NCBI GenBank assembly: GCA_020137815.1
Contig: CM035359.1
Span: 1,302,001 to 1,366,000, forward strand
Source: Hormiphora californensis
Taxonomy: Eukaryota; Animalia; Ctenophora
DNA: 64,000 bases
Reading direction: 5' to 3'
The notes beneath the pieces are model-generated. The model was not told the origin of the DNA. It saw only the letters and a list, made by a program, of their open reading frames with translations, and did not search any database. The position numbers and the translations under genes are program-made. Numbering within the stretch: position 1 is the stretch's first letter; each line of letters opens with the position of its first letter. Of the stretch, positions 3,101 to 48,900 are shown in pieces.

Positions 3101-6100
3101 ATGATTATATGGTAATATGAGACACTTCTGGGAAATGCTGAGTCCGCTCATATTATAAGCGAAAGGGTCAGCGTGATGCCTGACAGTGGCAGTTTGGGGT
3201 GGCCCAATAATCATTCTGGTTGTCAGCCCGACTTTCCTGATGGTTTCACTTTTTCACTTTATCGTACGTCATATCTTTCCCACCTGCCAACTTAATACGC
3301 TATAAGGGGGGGGGGGCGTGGTGCGACACCTTACTACTCCGCCTTCTGACCTGTGCAGTAGTGTGTTACATTTGCGAATCATTCAGCATCCAGCATCTGT
3401 ACACATCAATTGTACTGATCTTGGTATCGGTAACGAAATTACCCCTCGCAGCTGCATCGCGGGTGTCTGCAAGGTATAGTAGTAAATTCGCTACCAATGA
3501 CTGGTCCCCTATTTTGCTTTGGTAACGAAGTTACCCGCTCTGGACATAGGGCATTGCGATAGTAAGGCACTTCTTAGCGTGCCCGCAATATATAGGGGTA
3601 ATTGCGTTATTTTGCTCATCAACATGGTTTAAATGATATATTTGTGGCTAAGTTGTTAGTTGGTGAGGCTTCTATTTCATTGGTTGATGTGTTGCTTCCT
3701 CTTATCATAATAAAATGATTAAATGGTTTAGCTTTCCAGCATGCCCTGTCTCTCTCATCTATCATCTATCAACTTTGCGGCACCAAAGAGACTGTCAGGG
3801 TGAGCCTGTATTCTTCCTATAATGGAGTTTAGAGGGTATCCGGGCCGAAACCAGTTGGCTTCATTGGGACACTATCGCACTCACTATCTTTAGATTAAGA
3901 TTTACTAACTATAGCTGTTGTTAAATCTTAATCTAAAGATATTAAGTCTCACTCCATTTTAGATTACGACCAAACAGATCCGATAACAACTACAACTGAT
4001 CAGCCGGTGTACACTGCCAATCCCATGTCGACCACAATGAACAACTACGCCGTGGAAAACTCAAACGAAAAAGGTTTAAAAATTGTGATGAAAAAACCTG
4101 GTGATTGGTTCCCCGTCAGGGATTCCATGAAATGTGTGTTGCGTCCTGCTGTATTATTTCGTTGTATTATCTAGGTATATTCAAATATTTCTTATCTAGT
4201 TCTACCTATTATCTATTTTCTAATTTTCATAACTGTGCAATCAGGTGTAAAACTGTTTCCTATATTTTCCAGAGCGATTAGTGTATGGCACAGCTGCAGT
4301 AACAACAGGACCTTGTTTTGAGGCCGTTAGCAAAGCCAAGGAACGGGAACAAATTTCCGGAAACTCAGTATTTTATCCCTTCTGTGAGGACGATGGAACG
4401 TTCCGGGCCCTGCAATGTGGTAAGTGATTGTAGAATCAGGTATGATAATGCGTAATTAGAGGAGAGAGAACAATCAAACAATCACCGAGGAATTCAAAAC
4501 ATATCCTCCTAATATTGGTTCCCAATAATGAAGGTTTATTATAGACCACTGTGGCATTATGAGTTCATTATGGGATCATTATAGTATCTCCGACATAAAA
4601 TTGCCATATCTCGACATGAACTTCGAGGTGGAATTCGACAAGGAATAGCAGGCGTTTGTAGTTATGAACGACTGCTGTGCGCGGCACATTGGCACGTGCG
4701 GCATGGGCAGCAGGCGTTCATAACTACAAACGCCTGCTATTCCTCGTCGAATTCCACGTCGAAGTTCACGTCGAGATATGGCAATTATGTCGGATGACCA
4801 CTGTTAACTGTGGCATTATGGGATCATTATCAAATATTGCCAATAGGAACCCAAACGTGTTGGTGTGTTACCGGTGAAGGGAGGTTGTTTGCTGACTCTA
4901 TTGACGGTACTAGAGAACGAACTACGGAACAGTGTCTGGAATACCGAGCGAGGGAATTCGAAACAAATGAAATTGATGGTAAATAAGCAATACTTGTGTA
5001 CAAACAGCTTTAATCAATTTAGCTGTGGTAGATGGGGAACCACTCAACTGCCACAATGAATTTCCTGTGCATCTTTATCTCATGCTTCACTCTTTGGACA
5101 ATTATAGCTGACAATTATAGCCCTTGATTTATATTTATATTTCAGAACCTACAGAATTATGCGTTGTGAGTGCCAAGGTATACTCAGCCGGAGAGCGGTT
5201 TACCGTGGAATGCCAAACGTGCACGTGCGTGGGGAAGAATGAGATTGTGTGTTCGCCATCGATAGAATGTTCAGAAGGTAGGAAACTAAATCAGTTAAAC
5301 GATGGTAACTGACTAAATCAGTTAAACGATATGGTAACTGACACACATAATGATTAATACAAAATCCTTCGCATCCTTCTTTTAATACTTTCACAGAGAA
5401 AACTACCATTCCCCATTCCTCATTTTCAGAGGAGATATACTGTCAATACATGACGTCATTTGACTTTGTCTGTTCGAAGTGCTCCTGTAATGGTAACCAA
5501 CAATCATTCTCATGTCTGACATACGACAGGTAAAATTTATGAATTATTCTCCATCGCAAAGTTATTCGCCCAAAAGAATTCTCTTCCTCTACAATGTCAC
5601 AGCTGTGATAACCCAAAACATCCTCAAACAGATATTGTGGCCGTGAGATGACAGTTGAAGATAACCAGATTTGGTACGCCTATACGAACATGAATGTGGA
5701 ACCGACAACCTCCATGCCGGTCTACACGGGAAGGGGCAATGACCATGAGGTCGTGTTTGAGGTGACGGATTTGGTGGTCCCTGGAACTTCTGATTCGCCC
5801 GAAACAGGTAAAGGGACACATGGGTCTGTGAAACAGGTATAATGGCACACATGGGTCTGTGAAACAGGTATAATGGGACACATGGGTCTGTGAAACAGGT
5901 ATAATGGGACACATGGGTCTGTGAAACAGGTATAATGGGACACATGGGTCTGTGAAACAGGTATAATGAGACACATGGGTCTGTGAAACAGGTATAATGG
6001 GACACATGGGTCTGTGAAACAGGTATAATGGGACACATGGGTCTGTGAAACAGGTATAATGGGACACATGGGTCTGTGAAACAGGTATTATAATGGGACA

Positions 6101-9100
6101 CATGGGTCTGTGAAACAGGTATAATGGGGACACATGGGTCTGTGAAACAGGTATAATGGGACACATGGGTCTGTGAAACAGGTATAATGGGACACATGGG
6201 TCTGTGAAACAGGTATAATGGGACACATGGGTCTGTGAAACAGGTATAATGGGACACATGGGTCTGTGAAACAGGTATAATGGGACACATGGGTCTGTGA
6301 AACAGGTATTATAATGGGACACATGGGTCTGTGAAACAGGTATAATGGGACACATGGGTCTGTGAAACAGGTATAATGGGGACACATGGGTCTGTGAAAC
6401 AGGTATAATGGGACACATGGGTCTGTGAAACAGGTATAATGGGACACATGGGTCTGTGAAACAGGTATAATGGGACACATGGGTCTGTGAAACAGGTATA
6501 ATGGGACACATGGGTCTGTGAAACAGGTATAATGGGACACATGGGTCTGTGAAACAGGTATAATGGCACACATGGGTATGTGAAACAGGTATAATGGGAC
6601 ACATGGGTCTGTGAAACAGGTATAATGGCACACATGGGTCTGTGTAACAGGTATAATGGGACACATGGGTCTGTGAAACAGGTATAATGGGACACATGGG
6701 TCTGTGAAACAGGTGTATAATGGGACACATGGGTCTGTGAAACAAGTATAATGGGACACATGGGTCTGTGAAACAGGCATAATGGGACACATGGGTCCGT
6801 GAAACAGGTATAATGGGACACATCGGTCTGTGAAACAGGTATAATGGGACACATGGGTCTGTGAAACAGGTATAATGGGACACATGGGTCTGTGAAACAG
6901 GTATAATGGCAGACATGGGTATGTGAAACAGGTATAATGGGACACATGGGTCTGTGAAACAGGTATAATGGCACACATGGGTCTGTGTAACAGGTATAAT
7001 GGGACACATGGGTCTGTGAAACAGGTATAATGGGACACATGGGTCTGTGAAACAGGTGTATAATGGGACACATGGGTCTGTGAAACAAGTATAATGGGAC
7101 ACATGGGTCTGTGAAACAGGCATAATGGGACACATGGGTCTGTGAAACAGGTATAATGGGACACATGGGTCTGTGAAACAGGTATAATGGGACACATGGG
7201 TCTGTGAAACAGGTATAATGGGACACATGGGTCTGTGAAACAGGTATAATGGCACACGTGGGTCTGTGAGAGGCACTATTTCTACTGTTATACTGATGGT
7301 GAAGTTATTATAAAATTCTCTCAGTGCATGTTGTTCTGTACCAGACACCAGTGAACACTGAACAGCATACTGTATGCTGTACAGAACAGTACACGTATGC
7401 TGCATACCTTGGCCTTCCTGTACTTCCTCAATTATTTAGCCGTTCCTCACTTAGTTATAGTAGTTAAATGTCCATCAAGTTGTTTCTTGAGTTCCCCCCG
7501 CAAATGAGCCTGCTGCCTGGTTAAGTAGTTATATCATATCGGTCAGTCCCCATGGCGCCGGGAGTGGTGATCAATGTATAATACATTACTAATAATTAGT
7601 AGTGGGACAAAGTAAGGTATGCATATCAAATTGATTGAATTACATCCTAATTCTGACAGAAAACATTTTAGAAAATTCAGGATCGATGACAGAGGAGCGT
7701 GCGACTGAGTCTGCAGCAACCAATGAAAAAGATGAAGTTGCTACTCCAACTATTTTCCACATTGATGGTAGGTTGTTCCAAGCCCCCTTTTGTTAATCAG
7801 ACTCTACCAGCCCAACCACATGTACTGCAGTATAAGCAAGAAGTTTCAAAAATAGTGTAACAAGAATTATTGCATTATGTATTCATAATGCGGTTTTCCC
7901 TGCCCCAGATGGGTGTAAAATTGATGACTAAGCTTCAAATTCAGATTTTCCGATGAATTTTGCACTCTAAGAGCAATTTTTGGCTGATATGATGTTAGTT
8001 GCTATGGTAACCAGGGTGGTTGCTATGGTAACCAAGTCAGTTGCTATGATAACCAAGACAGTTGCTTAGGAGACCCTAGTTGGTGACCAAGCGCTTCATC
8101 TTTACCCCCAGGCGTCAGTCATCTTAACACCAGTCACTTGCAATTATTGTGTGACAGTAGTTTCATGCTTGGAAGACTTGCTACCACGTCATGGTACGGC
8201 TGTAGGGTACCCAAAGTGATTTCACGTGAAAGTAGGAAGTGTTACGAGTGAGTAATTGCGCGCCACAATGTGTGTTAATCATTTCCTTTGTTGCATCAAC
8301 AAAGTGTGAGTTGAAAGATTTATGAAGGAGCAGACTTTGTTGCTATGTGTAACGGTGGACAGACGGACAGACGGACACTTTTCATTTAACTACACAATCT
8401 GCTGATTTCTAAACCCTGAATGATCTTTTTAGCACGTGCGTGCTAAAAACATCACCCGGGCAGGGAAAAAATTCCAATGCTAAAGCCTCACAATCTTCGA
8501 AATGATACACTGGTCACAATGTCACTAAACTAAATGTGTGTTTAGAGAATGATAAGCAGTACAGGGTAACCGTCTACACAGCAGAAAAGAAGACTAGCTG
8601 GATCGATGCTTACTATGATTGCCAGTAAGTAGGGATTTCCCGAGTGAAAGGTTTCCCCTTCCCCGTTAAATGTAGGGATTTACCGGGTGAAAGGTTTCCC
8701 CCGTTAAATGTGGGGATTTACCGGGAGAAAGACTACCCCCCCCCCCCGGTAAAATCGGGGTCCCGGTAACTCGTTGTGTTTATGACAAATCATATTCCTC
8801 GGACTAAGGTCGAGCGCTATAAAAATAGTTCTCATGATAGCCTGGTATTAACTATTGGTAATAATCATATCTTAGGAGCCTTTAATTCGCTTTTTGAAAG
8901 CTTGAATCCTTATAAATTGCTCGACCACTTTCGTAGGGGAGCTAGCAGAAAAATGCAGAACCTTTAATTTGAGCCCTTAATTCCATTTGTATTTGTCAGG
9001 TCGATGGGAATGGTCCTACCTACCGACCTTGGATGAGGTTCTGAACACCTACCTCAGTAACTTCCTCCGACATCACATGATTGAAATTTGGCTCAACGCT

Positions 9101-34780: not shown

Positions 34781-36476
34781 ATGATTGGATGGACTGTTTT
34801 ACTGTTGGTTTTCGCAACTACGTGTCACACCAATACACTAAATGTCCTTGTAGGGTAAGTATATCATTGTTGAGGGTGGAGGACCCTCTATCACCCCTTA
34901 CGCTCCAGTTACAAAATTGAAACAGGACATCAGTTTCTCTGGACAGCTGGGACACTCCTAGTGAACCATGCTGCACGCGACATTTTCGATCACGTGATCG
35001 ATGTGAATTGCATTGAAAGTAGCGTGTCAGCACTCAGCACTCCAAATAGAAACTGACACCAGTTTTCACTGAAAACTGATACCAGGTTTCAATTTTGTAA
35101 CTGGTCCTTCAGCCAAGTTATTTTATGCCCATATATGGTGTTGACAATAACTCCCTACCTAGACGTGCAGACCAGACGGTGAGATCAACGTGTCAGGCGT
35201 GTCAAAGCGTAACAGGAACTTCAACTAATACATCCACCAATGATGTAATGTCAGATAATGCCGAGGGGGATATGCTTATTGGACGTGAGTATTACACAAC
35301 TTTACCGGCAGGGTAAGCTTCCCCCAATAAAGGAAATTTACGGTATTCGACCCCGATATATACCGGGCACCCCGATTTACCGGGCAAAACCCTTTCCCCC
35401 GAGGGTGCCGTTAAATCGGGGTCCAACAATATCAAATTTCTCCCTCAGTTCTGGTTCCACTAAAGCATAAACGTGGAAAGTACAAGGACCGAATTCGGTA
35501 CAGTAATGTGGCGATTGTCGAGGCGTTCAAGTGGGCCATTGACAACATCAACAAGGATGAGAGGATTCTACCCAACTTTACACTCGGATACGAGATAAAA
35601 GATACGATGAGTGATCCAGCTTTCGCCAGTGTTCAGGTATGAATATCTTCTTCTTCTTTTACGAGGCCAGGTCAGCCAGTAAGGTATGAATATCTTCTTC
35701 TTCTTGTACGAGGCCAGGTCAGCCAGTAAGGGGTGGGTACAATGAAGCTTCCGGTACCAGTAAAAATATATGTTCAGTCGAACCACCTCGATTTACCTGG
35801 CAATCTGCCCGAAATCCCCCGAGCATCTTGATGAATCGAGTTCCGACTTTACATCTAATGGCATATTTGTGATTTTTATAGAAATATACATTTTAAATTT
35901 CAAAATTGACAGTTCTGCTATGTTTCACTCCATGTTTAATTTCACATTTACTAGAATATATAATGCTATCTTCCTAATTAAGGCATTGGACCTGGCAGCT
36001 AAAAACTCGCTGTTTATTGTCGGACCTGGCAGCTCTAAAGTTGCAATTCAAGCTGCAACTTTAATGGGTAAGTTAATCAATTAGATTAATTAGATTAATC
36101 AATTAGATTAATTATATCATTCATTAACTTGGGTATACATGTAAAAAGTCTCTGGATTGAACTAGAGAGTTGTTGATCAGCAACCTACCAACCAGGAACC
36201 GACCGAATCAGGAAATACTGGTCCCTGATTGGCTGATAACCAGTCACGTGACCTAAATAACGAGTTCTGATTGGTTGTTTACTTGTTTCGGTCGGTTCCT
36301 ACTACGTGAGCCATGGTGTGCATAATGCTCCTGTTCCTATAATGCACGATCTGTATTATAACAGTGCTCCTGTATATTTAGGCATCATGGAATGTCGACT
36401 GTAGAAGCATTGAAATAGACTGCTATTATAACTAAAGGCCTTGTATAGAACTATAACTTTATAGTGAACGTTTGCA

Positions 36477-36558
<82 letters not shown>

Positions 36559-38410
36559 TAGAGGGATAATTTGAGGAGAAATGGTTGCGGTTAATGCAGC
36601 TAATGAATGTGTATGCAAAATTAGACCATGTCTAAATAACTTTGCGGATTTGTGGTCACAGAAGACTCTCTTTATCAGAGAAATAAATTGTAAATATATC
36701 GGTCGTGGTGGACAAATATTTGTGGACATGACATTGACACTATTCAGTCTTCAAATATTCCTAAATGTTTATTTAGAGCAAAAACTAATTGAAATTAGTT
36801 CGCCAGAAAGGTGGCCCATTTTGAACTTACTCCTTCATTTCCATCACCTTTGAGTTGAGGCTTCAAAGACATTGAGGTATCCGTAAACTTTTCCGCCTTC
36901 AACTCAAAGGTGACGGAAATGAAGGAGTAAGTTCAAAATGGGCCACCTTTCTGGCGAACTAATTTCAATTAGTTTTTGCTCTAAATTTGTACTCTTTTTT
37001 GGTCGTTTGAGGTCATTTATGACCTAAAACAACTAAGATAATTGTCAACTAAAGTGTTCAAATGTAATTCAAATGTATCCTGGGTTGTAGGAAACTGATT
37101 TGACGAAATTTTCAAAATTCGACGTCGTTTTGACGTTGTGACGTCACACGTGATGTCACGACGACGTAAAAAATTATGACAGACTATTTGGCCAATGAAG
37201 CACTAAACGTGTGGAAAGTTTTAAAGGCCATGGTAGTCAAGAACTGAAGTTATTGCACGAAATGAGAGTTTTTATGTGGATTTTCATATCAAATTTTTGA
37301 GTTCCGACGCGTTTTAAGGTCTAAAAATGACAAGTTAGAGAAATTCGCTATATTGTATCTGAAAGTTCAGACAATTTGCCACTAACGATTTTCCGTCAAA
37401 TCAGGAATCAGAATACGTCTTGAGGGTGTTAGAGGCGTTTGAAAATATTTGGTCTGAGATTGTTCAATGACGTCACTTTGTGACGTCACTACGGTCGTAA
37501 TAGTGAACATTTTGACCCGAAACCTTAACTAATGCATGCCCCGAACGATTTCCTAACGGATAAAATTTGGTTCAAGTCTCTAGCTAGTACGGTTCGGGCT
37601 ACAAGTGTTACACAGTGAAGCGTCTATATCTATATATCTATATATCTACAACGAAGTAAAACAACTACGTATTTGGTACGCTACAATTGTTTCATCGAAA
37701 CCCTTACGGGAAGCGAATCATCAGGCGACAAATTAGAAATGAGAATGAATTGGAATATAACCCTGCTCCTTTATAAAACAAAATAAACAGAACTTGACTT
37801 GTTCTTTCTTCCTAATAGATTTAGCAGCTCCTACTTCCTCTAGTTTCTTCGTGTAGCTGTCTGGTTGATCCCCCTAGTGGCTTGGCCATATATTTCCGTG
37901 GACTGTTGATCCTAAGTGTGGTGCTTTCATGTCATTTGTTTCCAAATACGAGATGTAGAAGGTGAGGAAAGTTCCAGTAGAGTGCTCAACCACCGCACCG
38001 TAGTTTGGGGGAGCTTTGCATTATCGCGGTAGAACTGGGAACTTCAACAAGATTTCCATCGAGTTTAGGATCCATCTGGTTTCCAGCAAAGAGTGCTCTA
38101 GCCGACAGTAAACTGTGGCGAGCTTATCACAACGAAGTAAAACAACTACGTATTTGGTACGCTACAATTGTTTCATCGAAACCCTTACGGGAAGCGAATC
38201 ATCAGGCGACAAATTAGAAATGAGAATGAATTGGAATATAACCCTGCTCCTTTATAAAACAAAATAAACAGAACTTGACTTGTTCTTTCTTCCTAATAGA
38301 TTTAGCAGCTCCTACTTCCTCTAGTTTCTTCGTGTAGCTGTCTGGTTGATCCCCCTAGTGGCTTGGCCATATATTTCCGTGGACTGTTGATCCTAAGTGT
38401 GGTATCTATA

Positions 38411-38441
<31 letters not shown>

Positions 38442-39946
38442 ACAAATTAAAAACAACAGAAGTTTTTTTTTAAAGGTCTATCTATCTATCTATATATATA
38501 CCTATCGCCACACTGAATTTTCTGTTTTGGGGGTGGTGTCATAATTTGCGACCGGAATGAGCTAGCTACTTCAAATTTTTACCGTCAGTAGAGGTCTATG
38601 TGAAGCTTCTTAGTACCAAATTTCAGCCTCCTAGCTCATCTGGTTCCGGAGTTAGGAGGGGTCGAAAAGTGCCAAAATGGGCTTAAACTTCAAAATTGTT
38701 ATATCTACGCTGTTGGCAAGCGGGCCCACTTTTTCAGGAAAAGTTTTTGGGGGGATGGGATGGGGCCACCTTTGCGCTTGCCAGCGCAGTGATAAAACCA
38801 AGCAAATTATGTCCTTCAGGAAGCTTAGGATTCCCAATGATAAGTTACGCTGCCACATCGGATATTCTAAGCAACACAGACCGGTTTTCTCTGTTTGCCA
38901 GAACGGTCCCATCAGATCTGTATCAATGCTGGGCTATCAAGGATATCGTGTTGTAAGTATTTTTTGTAAACGTTCCCACCCTTCTTATTTAGACGTGTTG
39001 AAAGCGTCTAATATGCATTATTCGTATCTAAATCAAATTGTTTCCATGTCTTGCGTCCTAATAACATTTCCCCCCCGTCCACAGGCATTATAAATGGTCC
39101 TTTGTCACTTTGCTCTTTTCTCCGGAGACATACGGGCAGGCGGGAGCCGAAGTGGTGCGGTCTCAGATCGAGGACAAGAAGTCTTGTGTGGACGTGTACG
39201 CAAGTGTGGTTTTGGATGACATGGAAGCTAATATCGAGGTACTATATTTCTCACCCAAACTACTTTCCTGATTATCAAAATTTAATTTTTAACTTAATAT
39301 TTAATATCAGTTCAGACTGTTCAGTTTCGAATCTGTCTACTAAAACAATTCAAGCTTGAATCAAGAATCAAGATGTTGTAATGACAATTAACTATAAAGT
39401 AGGTTTTGGCTGTTTTGAACACCCTCCATCACTCCCGTTTCAGACTCTCCGAATTGCGTTTGACCCCGTCGCAGCACCGTCCAATGCAAGTCGTCATCTC
39501 CACGCGAGAGTGGTTGTCTTATTTGCGACCAAAGACTATGCAAGGCAGCTTATAGCAGCGGCTATCAAATTAAAAAGTAAGGGTCTTACAACTAGACTCT
39601 CAAGTTGTAAGGAACACTAATTAAAGTAATTGAGAGCAAAGTTATGATCATTGATCAATCATCATTATAGTCATTACCAAACTTTATTTATTCCAGGTAT
39701 GAGGGATGAAACGTTTTTCAATGGTGTTACGTGGATAGCTCCTGATTCGTGGAGCAGCAACTCAGAACTTATTGAACAGATAGGGAAAAATAAACTAGGT
39801 CACTTCATTGGTATCACTCCTACATCTAATACGCTAGAAGGATTTAAGCAACATTTAACGTAATTAATGATAATAATTGGAGCGTTAATAATAATAATTG
39901 GAGCGTCTTTTGTGCAATAATTGACCAACGTTTGGCAAACTTGCAT

Positions 39947-42900: not shown

Positions 42901-45900
42901 AGGTAAGTCCATACATAAAACACCTGAGGATCATTGCGAGGACGAGCTTGAACATACAAGAGGATCATTACCGTAGAAGGACAGCTTCTTCCCAATCACT
43001 CGATCTATCACTGGAAAACATCTCGGATACCATGTTTTGGATGCCACTCCAAGATACCTCACTCCCAGTCATACTTTGCTTCGTGTTACGGGTACTATGG
43101 TAACCCCTAAAAACATCCAGCAATCGGTTCTTACTCATGACACCAATAAATAATGCTATGTGCTTCTCAAAGACAAGTCCATTCACAAACCACTTATCGA
43201 AGATGTCTACCAGGGGAATCATTGCTACTGCGACGGATGCCACTAAGACTGCAACTAACTGGAGAATCACTCTCCCTCTTAGCTTTCGAGAGACCTCATC
43301 TGACCCGCGATAGCGTAACGCCCTCAGGTTACCAGCCAACGGTAGCAACTAACCAATGCCATGACAAACGGACGACATTGTTGCCCCGACGGTGTTCAAA
43401 ACACCGATAACATACACGGAACTCCACTAATCCAGTCCACCTGACTTTCACAGAAATTCGAACCTATGTACCAGTGGAAGAAGGCAAACGTTAGCAGGTA
43501 TACGGAGTGAGGAGGTCAGCGAAAGAAATGCCAGTACCATTGATTTGTTGATGAACTCACCACTTTTCTTAGACTCCCTTACCTCACAAACACCTTGGAC
43601 ACGACAATAGCACCGAAAACAAGTCCTAAAACACCCATTATCACAGCTAACGCCAGGACACCATCGTTATAAACTGCTTTTCTTCTGCAACTGTCATTAC
43701 ACTCGTCTGAAAAGTCTATGCAATCAAACTTACCGTCACATTTTTGGTTGAGCGCAAGAAATGCTGACTTGTCAGAGCACTGGAAGTTGCTGGCACATCC
43801 CTCCTCGTCCGACCCATCTCCGCAATCGTCAACTAGGTCACACACCCTCTCAAACAAGATGCAGTCCGTGTTTTTACAGACAAAGAAGTTGTTGTGGTAG
43901 TTATCACCAGACTTTTGTGCGACGGTCAGGGTGTTTAACTGAAGGTTCAGTGAGTATATAATATGGTTGAGGTTTGAACATGTGCTTTGTAGGACTGGCG
44001 TCACTAAAGGACACCCCGCGTTGTGACAGAGTCCGGAGCAACTGTAGAACACGTAAGCCTCTCCGTACAAGTGTCTACAATCTCGTTTTACCCTCGGTAG
44101 AACCAGTTCGGTTGTAAGATTTTTACCGGAGAATGAATGAAATGGGTGGTTGAATTCAGTGGAGATCGCATTCTTTGCCTGATTGGATGAGAAGGTTGTC
44201 TAATCCTTTGGTGCACATGATATTCTTGTAAACCCGTCCCTTATGAGTTCTACTACTAAGAAGTTTCTGTGAAATCGCCACTCTTTTCCTACTAGCACGG
44301 CACACTCCTTCATCACACTTTTGGCTAAAGAAGCACAATAACGAACCCTCCACAAACTCGGCCTTGTCATCTTTACAAAGGAATACATCTGTGCATTTCT
44401 TAGGCATGTACTTGATCCGTTTCCTGGGGCCTTTACCGCACGTTTCCCAGTCATTCCTCTCATCGGATCCATCCAAACAATCGACAGCGCCATCTTGGAC
44501 CCACTCGGCAGGGATCCGCAATGCACCCTCCTTCAAGCTAAACCTCCGGATACACGTGGAATGGGTGAGCTTGGAGCACAAGCCACCCTTTTCATCAACC
44601 CCCATTGCACAATCATCCACCCCGTTACATAGTTGGTGTTTGTGGGTTGTACAACGGCGACTAATCGGTCGACACAATGTCTCGATACCATCATCGCAGA
44701 TGTTTGGGACATCATAATATACTTCATGACAGACAGCGTGGATGGAGACAGTGGACGGGAACCCCCCGATGAGGCACGAGCCTGCCACCATAGCAGGGTC
44801 CGTACAGTTGGTTTGGTCCATGAAGTCAGTGCAGTATGACTGAAAACGGAATCCCTCCGATTCTTTGAACATGTGGGTAAATGAGGGTAATGGCTTGAAG
44901 CATCTTGTCTTGCTGGTTAGGGGAAATATCCCCTTTACAGTTGAAAAGTGGGACATGCACCCCTCTCTAGTTGTCACATCTGCACTGGCCGGACCTAACC
45001 CATTAAAGGGGGCAAACAGGTACCTAGCTGTTAGAACATCCCACAAAACGCTCCCATACTCATGTCCATTACAATCCCGTTCATCAACACAAGTAAGAAA
45101 CTCAGTTTGGGAGGAGGACACCCACCAACCCTCACTACCCCCCACAGTAATATAATCACAAACACCATCACAAACCCCTCCCTCCTTTACCCACAATTCA
45201 AGAACTCTTGCTCCCGAGCCCAGAGGAACGGTAATTTTAGTCTGCAGAGCACGATCTGCAGCTGTACTGCTGCACACCTGGGAGGAGGGGTTTAGTTTGT
45301 ACAAACGGGTCGTCACATCGTAACAGATTGCCCCACAGACTGGATTAGTGGGGAAGATGTTCAGTTTCGCCCCGACTCGACCCCAATCCCCGCATGCTTG
45401 GTACTGCGCTGGATCGTGGGGACACAGCTTGTCGACAAACACCGTAACTGTTCGTGTGGCGATATTAACGATATGATGCTTGTAGTATGTCGTGTTGGGA
45501 GAGGTGGTGCAGGTCATCTTCATGGAGCCGTCCGGGTTGAAAGTGGAACAGCTCCGGACCAAGAATCCATTTTCAGCGATGATAGGACACTGGCCATCCT
45601 CCTCAGCAGCCGCGGTAGGAAGGGTGAGAATTATACCAAGAGCAAGGTATATCATTTTACAAAGTAAAAGTAAACTTGATTGTGGCTGATGGAGTGAAGC
45701 AAGGGTAAATATAATTCTATATAGAACAACAAAGAAGGGCAGGGACAACAAAAGGAATTGACTGCGTTGACACCACTAGCGTCATTGGACAGTGCTCTGT
45801 ACTTTGTTTCTTTAATTTTTACCGCCCTTTCGCTCATGTATAACAAATCAAAGGGGAACCAAGAGAAGGCTGCAAGTGCCAAAAACAGAAGAAACAATAG

Positions 45901-48900
45901 TTGTAACACCTCACCCTAGCTAAAGTTGGGTGTTAAAATGTTTTGTTTCTTTTTGACACAGAAGTCCCACTTTTAATTTCTCGAGTATTGTCTTGACTCG
46001 AGTCTTGGCCCTCGACCAAAGTTTTAGTATAATCTTTCAATTTCTATTGAAGAGTTTTCCGACCTATTCTGGATGATGTGCCAAAATAAAAAATAACAGC
46101 AATCCTAATATGTATCGGTATTATCCTAATCAGTATTATCCTAATCGGTAATTTGGTCTTTCCAGGAACGTACGAGACGACAACACGAGACTACGTTTCC
46201 TTCAACACAACCAACGGAGATTTCAAAGCCACGTATACCTTTATCACGTACCGATGAACAATCGTTTCCTAAAGTAATCCATTCGGTACGTGAATGGCAA
46301 CACGGAACATCGAATTCACGGTAATCCTACTTTTAAGGAATCAAAACCAATCGGCATTTGTATCAGTCGAGGACTATCGACCACGGATAAGGCAATCGTA
46401 CCATCGGTAATCCTAATGGTACCAAGGATCATTAGTAATTGGTTTCAGGAACTAAGGACAGGACTCACGTTCTTCAACAAAAAGATTTAAGACTAACCTT
46501 TAGTACGATGAAATATTCCAAAGAATCCTTGTCACGAATGGAAACTGAATGGTCAGTCAATATTGGAGAAACCATCGTGTGTTGGGCAGTGAGGAGTCGT
46601 ACCCGGATCCCAAGGAAACCTGTGTGCAACAGAGTATCTGTGATAATGTGGAACGGCCGACAAGTAAAGACGTCGTGATTAGGACGGATGGGTTGATCAG
46701 GGACAGTATTGATTCGGTGGTTCCGATAAAAATGAGCTCAGGGTTCAGGTGAACAAATTTATTACGTCTACAAAAAATGTTAGACGTCGACGTGATGTCT
46801 GCCCCACGGCAGACTGTTTTATCAATGCAGAAAAGTCTTTTTGGGCAGAGTCCGTGATACCATACAACTCTTTCAACTGGTATCTGATCATTCTGGAAGG
46901 GCGAACCGTGTAAGGGCGATTATGAGGATGGTGATCTGTTAGATTCAGTTGTAGATTTCAGTAATTGTACGCGTGTTAGTTAAATATTTATTTTGCCAAA
47001 ATCCTGAATGAACTCGGACGTGACGCCCCCGCCAGATTATCTAAAAAGGAGTGATACAATCAGCTCGACATTCTGACGTACACCCCAGCGGGAGGTTTGT
47101 TTAATGCATTTGGCATTATCGGAATTGCGTACTATCATATTATTGTTGTTTTCATTAACACTCGTTAGAGTAACCAAAAAATTATAAATCTCAACACTAG
47201 CTCATAGGGTGGTGAATCTGCAATTCTGCTGATCACTATTACTTTTAGTCATTACGTTAGAACCAATTAATAAACGCTGTAGGACTCGTGATCAATGATT
47301 ATACGATCGTTAATCGCAACGTCACTCCTTGTTCCATTAGAGATAGAGATGTATTCCGTTGAACTAAAGGCAGAAGTTCCACGGATAGATCCATTTGTTT
47401 TCATTATAGTTGCACGTGCTATGGATTCGGTCTGTGGTGAGATTTTTAGTTCTTCATTTATCGTGGGAACTGGGATCTATTTCGGTAGAATTGATCCCTT
47501 TTTTTAGTAGATAAAAGTAAGGGAAGAATGATGTAACACTGCTACTTCAGATTGAGTGTTTTTCCCTGGAATAGAAAAATCCAAAAGCGAAAGTAAAAAA
47601 AGAACTAAAAGCTATTAATTGATCGTAGAACTTCAATCGAATTATATGACACAACCTTCCAAGAACAAGAACCTCCATATTATCTGAATTAGAAGTAGAA
47701 AAACTTCAATCGAACTATATGACATAACCTTCCAAGAACTTTCCAAGAACAAGAACCTCAATATCTGAATTAGAAGTAGAAAAACTTCAATCGAACTATA
47801 TGACATAACCTTCCAAGAACTTTCCATTGGATCTTGGAAAGTTTCCAAGAACAAGAACCTCCATATCTGAATTAGAAGTAGAAAAATATACAATTGTCAC
47901 ACCCGAATTTTAAAATTTTCAACTAAAATGGATAGACCGCAGCTCCTGCACTCATTCTATTCATGTTTTAGATAATTATATTCATATGTTTCAGGTCAAC
48001 ACCGATAGTGAAGGCCAGTAGTCGGGAGCTCTGTTTTGCAATGCTTTGCGGGGTGTTCCTGGGATTCCTGTCATCCCTCTTGAGTCTGGGGAAACCGACC
48101 GACAAAATATGCATGGTAATTGGTTTGTTGAGCCTCAAATCTGAAACTTGTTTATGTGGAAGGCGGTGTATTTTTATTAACCTCCAGCATTTCAGGCACA
48201 TTTGTGTTTTGGCTGTATGTTTGGGTCTCTTACCATTATCCCATTGTTCCTTAAGGTCACCCGAGTTTTCTATCTTTTCTTCCAGGTAAGACATTTCACA
48301 ATAATTACAGATAATAGAGATTCAGATTTGAATGTACAATCGGACCCTTTCCCCCGAGCATCCCAGTAAATCGGGGTCCAGCTGTATCATGGGTGTATCA
48401 TGATGGTTCGTTTGATGGAATTAGGGGTATCATCTAACCTTAGTATCTCGATCTGGTTGCTTTTTAGTGCAGTACTTATCCCTGGGGGGTTTGGGTGGAA
48501 TATTAGTATAAATCAGGAACAGACCGAATCAGAAAGTACTGGTCCCTGATTGGATGATAACCAGTCACGTGACCTAAATAACGAGTTCTGATTGGTTGAT
48601 CCTGGTATCATAAATACGACTATTTTTCATTCCAGAGTAAGAAGAGCAATGGAAAACCGCCCAAGTACCTTCTACCGATTTGGCAGTGCTTGATTTGCTT
48701 CATACTTGTTACAACGCAAGTTACACTTCTCAGTATAGTGAGCGTATGGTTCCCCCTCAAAGCCATACCAACCTATCCGGCACGAATGTATGTTGTATTT
48801 ATATTGGCAGTCACTAGTTTAATTTTAAAGTTGATTTAGAAACTTCTCAATCCAAGCAGCAATTGGAATGAGAAAATGTGTAAAGTTTACAAGTTACAAC

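Follow-up and report, generated by a model that had tools for sequence, protein, structure and literature searches.

A hammerhead-bearing 481-nt non-coding element in an intron of the ctenophore Hormiphora californensis, very probably a young non-autonomous derivative of Penelope-like elements

The window analyzed here is a stretch of 64,000 nucleotides of the ctenophore Hormiphora californensis (contig CM035359.1, positions 1,302,001 to 1,366,000), in which an earlier note, made from the sequence alone, had pointed to a tandem hammerhead-ribozyme retroelement of Penelope or retrozyme kind hidden antisense in an intron of a G-protein-coupled receptor (GPCR) gene. According to our analysis, this block, at window positions 37648-38403, is very probably one young insertion, on the minus strand, of a non-coding, non-autonomous derivative of Penelope-like elements (PLEs) of the so-called 'retrozyme' type. 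The proposed retroelement nature was upheld by dispersed copies with one 3' end, variable 5' truncation and target-site duplications (TSDs), by covariation in the hammerhead stems, and by PLEs of the same genome that share the hammerhead and the tail.

The insertion contains two direct repeats of 275 nt (37648-37922 and 38129-38403), which a repeat search and a recount found to be identical at 275/275 positions and spaced by 481 nt, as had been described. The block was also confirmed to lie inside a (TATC)n tract, seen on both flanks, and to be devoid of a protein open reading frame (ORF): when the 481-nt unit was read as a tandem or as a circle, the longest ATG ORFs had 29 aa (minus strand) and 15 aa (plus strand). 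Instead, its designation as a tandem element had to be revised, the block being one insertion of 1.57 units and not an array, with a repeat of 275 nt here and of 416 nt in a copy on another contig (C12). Tandem Repeats Finder did not report the 481-nt period at 1.57 copies. Because the length of the apparent long terminal repeat (LTR) is set by the truncation point of each copy (275, 416 or 0 nt), the repeats are pseudo-LTRs and not LTRs. Besides, a tRNA-derived short interspersed nuclear element was ruled out, as no tRNA was found in a search of 36500-39500 and the 3' end of the element reads ...CGUUGU.

The genome (110.7 Mb, 45 contigs; coordinates outside the window carry our handles for contigs, C, and loci, L) was then found to contain 43 matches to the 481-nt unit. 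Three long copies, in the window and on C12 and C13, are 98.5-99.6% identical to one another and end at exactly the same 3' base, 34 nt past the predicted cut site, and their 5' ends are all different. About eight more loci hold only the last 66-104 nt of the unit. These short copies are 96-99% identical, share that 3' end and are bordered by TSDs of 9-14 bp, among them GATCTTTTAGT, GTTGAAATG and TATGTTTTA. All copies of the family use this short 3' end. The association of a common 3' end with variable 5' truncation and TSDs argues for target-primed reverse transcription, and the element, as judged from its copies, is mobile, i.e., a retroelement rather than a local duplication. Some short copies with shared flanks were segmentally duplicated, in inverted orientation at L007 (C3:6129975) and L013 (C3:6150872) and in direct orientation at L015 (C10:3812722) and L019 (C10:3808473), so that each pair counts as one insertion event.

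This distribution bears on two other explanations of the direct repeats. The presence of only 1.57 units at the locus, next to a slippage-prone (TATC)n flank, could suggest a local tandem duplication, or nascent minisatellite, generated by replication slippage with no RNA intermediate. Such an origin is scarcely credible, since other chromosomes bear near-identical copies that agree exactly in their 3' end, differ in their 5' ends and have TSDs of their own; the C13 copy falls short of a full unit, and that on C12 lies, with its 10-bp TSD, in non-repetitive DNA. Hence, the single-locus duplication that the earlier note had considered is contradicted by the 43 matches and refuted by the dispersed copies. 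An LTR-type element, either a terminal-repeat retrotransposon in miniature or a plant-style LTR retrozyme, with true 275-bp LTRs and mobilised by an LTR retrotransposon, would equally account for identical direct repeats that flank a short non-coding core and carry hammerheads, as in plant retrozymes (PMC4918200). It is contradicted by a repeat whose length varies among copies (275 nt in the window, 416 nt on C12, no repeat on C13) and by TSDs of 9-14 bp instead of 4-6 bp, and is very improbable also because the left boundary is a mere variable truncation point, the hammerhead is of minimal type I and not type III, and the layout is the same as that of the PLEs in the genome.

On the minus strand, each repeat carries the motif GUCGC-CUGAUGA-U UCG CUU CCC GUAA GGG UUU CGA U-GAA-ACAAUUGU-A^GCG (caret, predicted cut), which can be written, with its stem II arms kept together, as GUCGC-CUGAUGA-UUCGCUUCCC-GUAA-GGGUUUCGAU-GAA-ACAAUUGU-A^GCG. 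The full hammerhead core claimed for each repeat, CUGAUGA...GAA...A with a CGC/GCG stem I, was seen in both, complete at C3 U4 G5 A6 N7 G8 A9, G12 A13 A14, A15.1-U16.1 and H17, and the motif sequence led to the same predicted cut positions, 38163/38162 and 37682/37681. Stem I is composed of 3 bp (CGC/GCG), whereas stem II comprises U.U, U-A, C-G and G-C, a 3x3 internal loop, CCC/GGG and a GUAA loop. A stem II register with an extra base after A9 gives no pairing, while the register without this bulge gives the U.U, U-A, C-G and G-C series. Helix III is an 8-nt palindrome, ACAAUUGU, with no loop, and for this reason the hammerhead can form only as a dimer. The motif displays the traits of PLE minimal hammerheads, namely a short helix I, a long helix II, a palindromic 15.2-16.2 segment, and a site in direct repeats 34 nt from the 3' end. 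The long, GNRA-capped stem II remarked upon earlier holds for the window copies, which have a GUAA cap, but the cap is not conserved, since a sister family (81-85% identity to the 481-nt element, no ORF) has GUCA.

A genome-wide search with the pattern CTGATGA-N8-40-GAAACAATTGTH returned 86 matches versus none for the reversed control. Pairing was counted over 35 distinct instances with pairs set from the invariant core, a procedure that involves no alignment choice. In this anchored count, stem I positions 1-3 were paired in 30, 24 and 26 of the 35 instances, and each of stem II positions 2-4 in 31/35, by four to five types of pair; pairing of this extent was obtained in 0 of 2000 shuffles. 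A MAFFT alignment of 24 hammerhead families (A2) led to the same picture, with 72% of cells paired versus 43% in shuffles and a covariation score of 0.694, versus 0.204 for shuffled alignments and 0.10-0.24 when partners were slid by 1-3 columns. These pairing and covariation figures overstate independence because the instances are related, yet they still include more than 15 quite different stem II sequences. Indeed, a compensatory change in stem II is illustrated by the sister family, in which UCG/CGA is replaced by UGG/CCA, and the core is invariant across the 24 aligned families. A covariance model built from this alignment (R1) gave at least 133 genomic matches. Going by motif count and stem covariation, the hammerhead is under selection and conserved as a structure, and the check on core and stem conservation among genomic copies was thus answered in the affirmative.

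The U.U at position 10.1/11.1, at the base of stem II, had been singled out as an unusual point of the window copy. It turned out to be the commonest state in this class, being found in 21/35 distinct instances (G-C in 9/35) and in 15/24 aligned families, and it has a published precedent in the axolotl hammerhead HHR_Amex2 (PMC7229834). From this distribution, U.U is a trait of the lineage and not damage to the window copy. A second family of the genome shares the hammerhead class of the 481-nt element (U.U base, ACAAUUGU helix III, A at position 17) and differs from it in unit sequence and in stem II (UUGGUGCC...GGCAUCAU). This family forms true tandem arrays, in which at least three units, and as many hammerheads, follow one another every 450-460 nt or so (C2:40261-41264 and 47382-47929; C4:5002082-5004883; hammerheads at C2:40261/40721/41181 and C4:5002082/5002532/5002987), whereas the 481-nt family occurs only as insertions of 0.5-1.9 units. 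Head-to-head pairs of hammerheads on opposite strands, 2-16 nt apart, were also observed (C1:5958891/5958926; C3:3279143/3279184; C7:4840599/4840642; C11:3990830/3990878), an inverted 5'-truncated arrangement described for PLEs.

The relationship with PLEs was addressed within the same genome, where the GIY-YIG profile yielded 66 matches. The GIY-YIG ORFs examined have the domain at the C-terminus, and one combines an N-terminal GIY-YIG with RVT_1 and is of the Naiad type. An autonomous PLE (L043/L044/L048/L049), with a unit of 2351 bp delimited by hammerheads at L044:4489 and L044:6840, encodes a reverse transcriptase (RT) with a C-terminal GIY-YIG. Its RT/endonuclease (EN) ORF is followed by CAGUU-CUGAUGA-AAUACAAUUUUGUAUU-GAA-ACAUGUGU-A^AACUG and then by a 34-nt tail ending ...CUUGUUUUUAUUUGU. 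Some of its copies terminate with this tail, 34 nt past the hammerhead, and others extend by 55 nt into the first part of the following unit. Like the 481-nt element, this 2.35-kb PLE has the hammerhead directly 3' of the body and a 34-nt tail ending ...UUGUUUUUAUUUGU; it shows an optional extension past the short 3' end as well as partial tandem and inverted arrangements, and one of its copies occupies a (GATA)n tract like that of the window insertion, within a paralogue of the repeat that hosts the latter. Unlike the 481-nt element, it encodes enzymes and has A-U at 10.1/11.1, ACAUGUGU as helix III and a 5-bp stem I, and the two units share no extended nucleotide similarity. Further relatives with an ORF, whose proteins are 42-46% identical to the query ORF, were located some 65-100 nt upstream of hammerheads of the U.U and ACAAUUGU type, for instance C4:6411339-6412481 with its hammerhead at 6411235, C3:238666 and C2:9779859. 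In 20 further hammerhead families, the 25-35 nt past the cut end in yUUGUUUy..UUUGU, like the 481-nt element. The sister family has two 3' ends 110 nt apart, the longer one ending ...CUACUGCGAUUA and bounded in L012 by its own TSD, ATTAACTAAATC. Two alternative 3' ends constitute the PLE 'tail', which results from two internal RT start sites (Frangieh et al., PMC11167929; also PMC8557442). Since both the sister family and the 2.35-kb PLE have two 3' ends, the architecture is PLE-type in detail.

Two further observations concern the PLE complement of this genome. The Naiad-type PLE (L034:2540-5299, i.e., C7:5326039-5328798, minus strand) has a 920-aa ORF with GIY-YIG at 55-92 and RVT_1 at 574-773, and no hammerhead was seen in the 330 nt downstream. 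Other PLE families with a C-terminal EN carry different hammerhead-like 3' motifs, with CUGAAGA cores (A at position 7) or a CCGAUGA variant, both of which fall outside the search pattern and model R1 (L035, L036, L037 at about 310 nt past the ORF stop, L040 at about 190 nt, L038 and L039).

Resemblance to the 2.35-kb PLE in hammerhead, in 34-nt tail and in the motif UAGAGCACU just past the 3' end could also mean that the window block is what an internal deletion left of a single autonomous PLE insertion, its ORF being lost, and not a member of a self-propagating family. This is quite improbable: the same 481-nt unit with its 206-nt middle is present at three loci with independent truncations and target sites, an ORF-less sister family exists, and a blastn search with the element as query, run over 16 PLE loci, recovered nothing but the microsatellite flank, with no similarity to PLE coding sequence. 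The independent copies of the same non-coding unit contradict a deleted solo PLE.

The choice of target adds to the PLE-like picture. (GATA)n tracts are occupied by two of the three long copies and by one autonomous PLE insertion, although a genome-wide search for (GATA)5 gave only 1049 overlapping matches, which on C1, a contig of 10.5 Mb, fall at about 15 loci, and the tracts make up an estimated <0.01% of the genome. Three independent insertions in such rare tracts indicate a target bias. A bias towards microsatellites is known for PLEs, usually for (TA)n and (CA)n (PMC8557442). In the window, the insertion lies inside an older repeat, 36900-37647 corresponding to L049:5982-5237 (93.7%) and 38473-38796 to L049:2754-2433 (95.7%); in the paralogous host repeat on C13, the same microsatellite is occupied by an inverted pair of 2.35-kb-type PLE copies. 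The older repeat is itself dispersed, at least about 1.1 kb long and provided with its own (GATA)n tract (window 36771-37647 and 38473-38796; L049:2433-2754 and 5237-6111), and contains an 88-nt inverted repeat (36771-36858 and 36899-36986, 99% complementary). A perfect (TG)29 microsatellite is located at 36500-36557, about 1.1 kb from the element.

The sequence of the copies also informs on their template. Repeats inside an insertion are identical, in the window (275/275) as on C12 (416/416), whereas the window and C12 units differ at 8 sites; those of the differences that fall within a repeated segment occur, without exception, in both repeats of the copy concerned. This is illustrated by a U-to-C change in stem II that is found in both window repeats and in no other copy. 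A tandem genomic master is disfavored, because a mutation in one of its units would give offspring with unequal repeats. Repeats that are equal within and unequal between insertions are instead sequence-level evidence that the template behaved as a single unit copied more than once round. This template was most likely a hammerhead-processed, circularised monomer, as far as can be read from the copies, the alternative being serial jumps on identical monomers. Rolling-circle reverse transcription of a circular monomer has been proposed for PLEs and retrozymes (PMC4209133, PMC7229834).

Traces of the unit were also found in 11 public runs, 10 of them recorded as RNA and all of them marine or seawater libraries. 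Contigs covering parts of the unit came from four RNA libraries of four studies. An oligo-dT library provided a 114-nt contig that matches 37744-37857 with no mismatch, and a metatranscriptome provided a contig of 509 nt with overlapping 30-nt ends (37833-37862), which gives a closed path of about 479 nt with no flank. This contig, about 93% identical to the window unit, contains the hammerhead and a diverged tail, directly followed by the beginning of the unit. As contigs assembled from environmental libraries, which show neither strand, ends nor circularity, these traces weakly suggest the expression of multimeric or circular forms.

From the anatomy and published PLE biochemistry, the following course of events may be proposed. 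A PLE RT/GIY-YIG enzyme supplied in trans would nick the (GATA)n microsatellite within the older intronic repeat and would begin reverse transcription of the element RNA at a set internal position (...CUUCGUUGU); copying would run beyond one unit length and then stop. In a transcript carrying two hammerheads 481 nt apart, these would pair as a dimer and cut after GUA at both predicted sites, which would free a 481-nt monomer that would then be circularised. The 2.35-kb PLE is a plausible enzyme partner, on the basis of its hammerhead and tail. As for the linked RT/GIY-YIG partner that had been anticipated, the genome is rich in PLEs with the hammerhead class and the tail end of the element, but none was found within 1.5 kb of the copies or with the exact hammerhead.

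Several points weigh against a PLE-derived, self-cleaving element. No PLE ORF was detected by blastx within 1.5 kb of 481-nt or sister-family copies, and no autonomous PLE with the exact hammerhead or tail of the 481-nt element was found in the genome. Global alignment with the end of the 2.35-kb PLE scored only about 2.6 standard deviations above shuffles and recovered short motifs such as UAGAGCACU. The RNA contigs could also stem from DNA carry-over or from a long tandem array in a relative. All genomic copies run unbroken across the cleavage site, which implies that the template was uncleaved there or religated. In cofolding, the minimum free energy structure draws the 8-bp intermolecular helix III, with an energy gain equal to that of shuffled sequences. 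Rfam hammerhead models gave no match, at the gathering threshold or even at E<=10, and the hammerhead model search suggested in the earlier note succeeded only with the custom model R1. Those models are built for a longer helix I and a helix III closed as a hairpin, and do not describe loop-less minimal motifs. We attribute the silence of Rfam to the loop-less helix III and the 3-bp stem I and not to absence of the motif. G10.1 helps to bind the catalytic metal, and with U.U in place of G10.1-C11.1 the activity of the window hammerhead may be low. By analogy with the axolotl U.U hammerhead, which is efficient as a dimer, activity is possible despite this replacement. Besides, published PLE hammerheads cleave poorly in vitro (PMC4209133), and for one PLE cleavage was not needed for insertion (PMC11167929).

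These last points are also the strength of a different account of the same PLE-dependent element, in which the hammerhead would be a folded module bound by a PLE protein and not a ribozyme, the templates being linear and unprocessed, with template jumping and no circle. Experiments in vitro showed that a PLE RT initiates at internal sites of unprocessed RNA, with insertion not lowered by mutations in the hammerhead and with no reads ending at the cut (PMC11167929). These results, together with the poor cleavage of PLE minimal hammerheads, the cleavage site intact in all copies and the replacement of the metal-binding G10.1 by U.U in most families, fit such a module. Furthermore, in the truncated copies of the two sister families, about 10 of 14 independent 5' ends fall within -3 to +2 nt of the first base of stem I (GUCGCC). 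Such a cluster is not expected from random 5' truncation, and the 83-nt piece made of hammerhead and tail behaves as a discrete module. The invariance of the core (C3-A9, G12-A14, A15.1-U16.1, H17) while the stems covary is, however, what would be expected from selection for catalysis. The identity of repeats within insertions requires a one-unit template, for which cleavage to monomers is the simplest explanation, the 479-nt contig from an RNA library closes on itself, and the axolotl U.U hammerhead cleaves as a dimer (PMC7229834). A non-catalytic hammerhead is for these reasons possible, but we consider it doubtful.

The pile-up of 5' ends at the first base of the hammerhead hints at either a defined RNA 5' end or a protein-bound module. 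In one reading, transcripts start there, and the 83-nt copies are run-off cDNAs started at the first ...CGUUGU site; in the other, the hammerhead and tail form an RNA piece held by the enzyme. In addition to a TATAT at -30 from the first base of stem I (window 38210 and 37729, minus strand; Table 1), a TATAA is present at -46. An extended proposal, which we regard as speculative and rather improbable, is that the 83-nt hammerhead and tail constitute a PLE launch module, in which transcripts would start at stem I, cDNA would start at ...CGUUGU, and the U.U dimer would trim a 481-nt monomer to be circularised for rolling-circle copying. If true, the circle pathway linking hammerheads, PLEs and retrozymes would go back to the base of animals, in a version whose core lacks the G10.1 metal ligand.

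The host gene was examined by scanning all ORFs at 27-64 kb, followed by whole-genome searches with 7tm_3 and ANF_receptor (Table 1). In the window, 7tm_1 had no match, and Pfam searches of 30 individual ORFs were blank. Because plus-strand ANF_receptor exons flank the element and a plus-strand 7tm_3 exon lies beyond, the element, with its hammerheads on the minus strand, is antisense in an intron of a class C GPCR gene, which bears out the reported location in a GPCR intron and specifies the class. That this orientation spares the host pre-mRNA is a reasonable suggestion from a single locus. Between the ANF_receptor and 7tm_3 exons, minus-strand open frames of up to 531 aa with LDL-receptor class A repeats occur at 43582-45775; they correspond either to a nested or antisense gene, or to a situation where the two GPCR parts belong to different genes.

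Table 1. Location of the element, its parts, its long copies and the surrounding host exons (window positions unless a contig handle is given).
Feature	Position	Strand	Remarks
Whole insertion (window copy)	37648..38403	-	756 bp = 1.57 units of the 481-nt non-coding element; 5'-truncated upstream unit plus one full unit; (GATA)n flanks
Upstream partial unit, pseudo-LTR copy 1	38129..38403	-	275 nt; 100% = 37648-37922
Single-copy middle of unit	37923..38128	-	206 nt; same segment in C12 copy at 98% identity
Downstream repeat, pseudo-LTR copy 2	37648..37922	-	Ends in the 3' end common to the family, ...UUUUACUUCGUUGU
Predicted 481-nt monomer	37682..38162	-	Span between the two predicted cuts; 42.6% G+C; deduced from the two hammerheads
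34-nt 3' tail after cleavage site	37648..37681	-	Ends GUUGUUUUACUUCGUUGU; matches the yUUGUUUy..UUUGU end
Hammerhead 1	38157..38211	-	Predicted cut 38163|38162; model R1, 51.2 bits, E 3.5e-9
Hammerhead 2	37676..37730	-	Identical to hammerhead 1 (51.2 bits by R1); predicted cut 37682|37681
TATAT, -30 from first base of stem I	38236..38240; second copy 37755-37759	-	Possible promoter element (speculative)
Imperfect (TATC/TATA)n, target microsatellite, 3' side of element	37621..37647	.	From sequence and repeat search
(TATC)n, target microsatellite, 5' side of element	38404..38441	.	(TATC)9.8 tract measured at 38403-38441
C12 copy	C12:2332331-2333229		897 nt, 1.86 units; 10-bp TSD AATTATCCAA; unique DNA
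C13 copy	C13:613573-613836		261 nt, 0.54 units; (GATA)n flanks
ANF_receptor exon piece, profile positions 4-42	35520..35636 (C10:1337520-1337636)	+	E 8.4e-4; alone below family cut-off
ANF_receptor exon piece, profile positions 73-114	38825..38950 (C10:1340825-1340950)	+	32.7 bits, over cut-off
7tm_3 (class C GPCR) exon piece, profile positions 17-75	47948..48121 (C10:1349948-1350121)	+	45.5 bits

Among known systems, the 481-nt element is best filed with the non-autonomous hammerhead-bearing PLE derivatives, i.e., the animal 'non-LTR retrozymes' (PMC7229834; bioRxiv 10.64898/2026.07.22.740005). Like the minimal hammerheads of metazoan PLEs (Cervera & de la Pena 2014, PMC4209133), its motif is of type I, with a short helix I (3 bp here), a long helix II and a palindromic helix III that forms only as a dimer, and with its site near the 3' end in direct repeats; in those genomes as in this one, there are many covarying families and most copies are solo motifs of truncated elements. 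By contrast, the PLE motifs have an extra nucleotide between A9 and 10.1, absent from the window motif, and a highly conserved G10.1-C11.1 where the window motif has U.U, and the 481-nt element departs from their carriers by its full 8-nt palindrome ACAAUUGU without a loop and by the lack of an ORF. The U.U majority in a covarying set questions how essential G10.1-C11.1 is in dimeric minimal motifs. The axolotl HHR_Amex2 (PMC7229834) has the same U.U mismatch at the base of helix II and is weak as a monomer, with much better cleavage in dimeric constructs; it differs from the window motif by its hairpin helix III, its contacts between loops 1 and 2, its 350-bp arrays and its tens of thousands of copies.

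Metazoan non-LTR retrozymes (Cervera & de la Pena 2020, PMC7229834) are, like the 481-nt element, non-coding and low in G+C, and consist of units of a few hundred nt arranged head to tail, every one of them bearing a type I hammerhead, with TSDs longer than 4 bp. They also co-occur with PLEs, have the terminal architecture in common and have been proposed to use monomer and circle intermediates. Non-LTR retrozymes have been proposed to be non-autonomous PLE derivatives (bioRxiv 10.64898/2026.07.22.740005). Their units, however, are reported at 170-400 nt, shorter than the 481-nt unit, and lie in arrays, whereas the present family has 0.5-1.9 units per locus. Invertebrate retrozymes carry a canonical type I hammerhead, whereas the 481-nt element has the PLE minimal type without loop-loop contacts, and the window copy is intronic while a vertebrate survey found depletion in introns. 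Plant LTR retrozymes (PMC4918200) are likewise non-autonomous, with hammerheads in direct repeats around a non-coding core, and a circular RNA intermediate has been proposed for them. They are set apart by hammerheads of type III, by true LTRs accompanied by a primer-binding site and a polypurine tract, by TSDs of 4 bp, by a high G+C content and by Ty3/Gypsy partners, all of these being foreign to the 481-nt element. A full-text literature search for ctenophores together with hammerheads returned no report linking both, and only a passing mention of ctenophores as hosts of Naiad PLEs (PMC8557442). The findings leave the known picture of such elements unchanged, their kind being already known in other animals, and add to it a clean, young case of the hammerhead/PLE partnership in a ctenophore genome.

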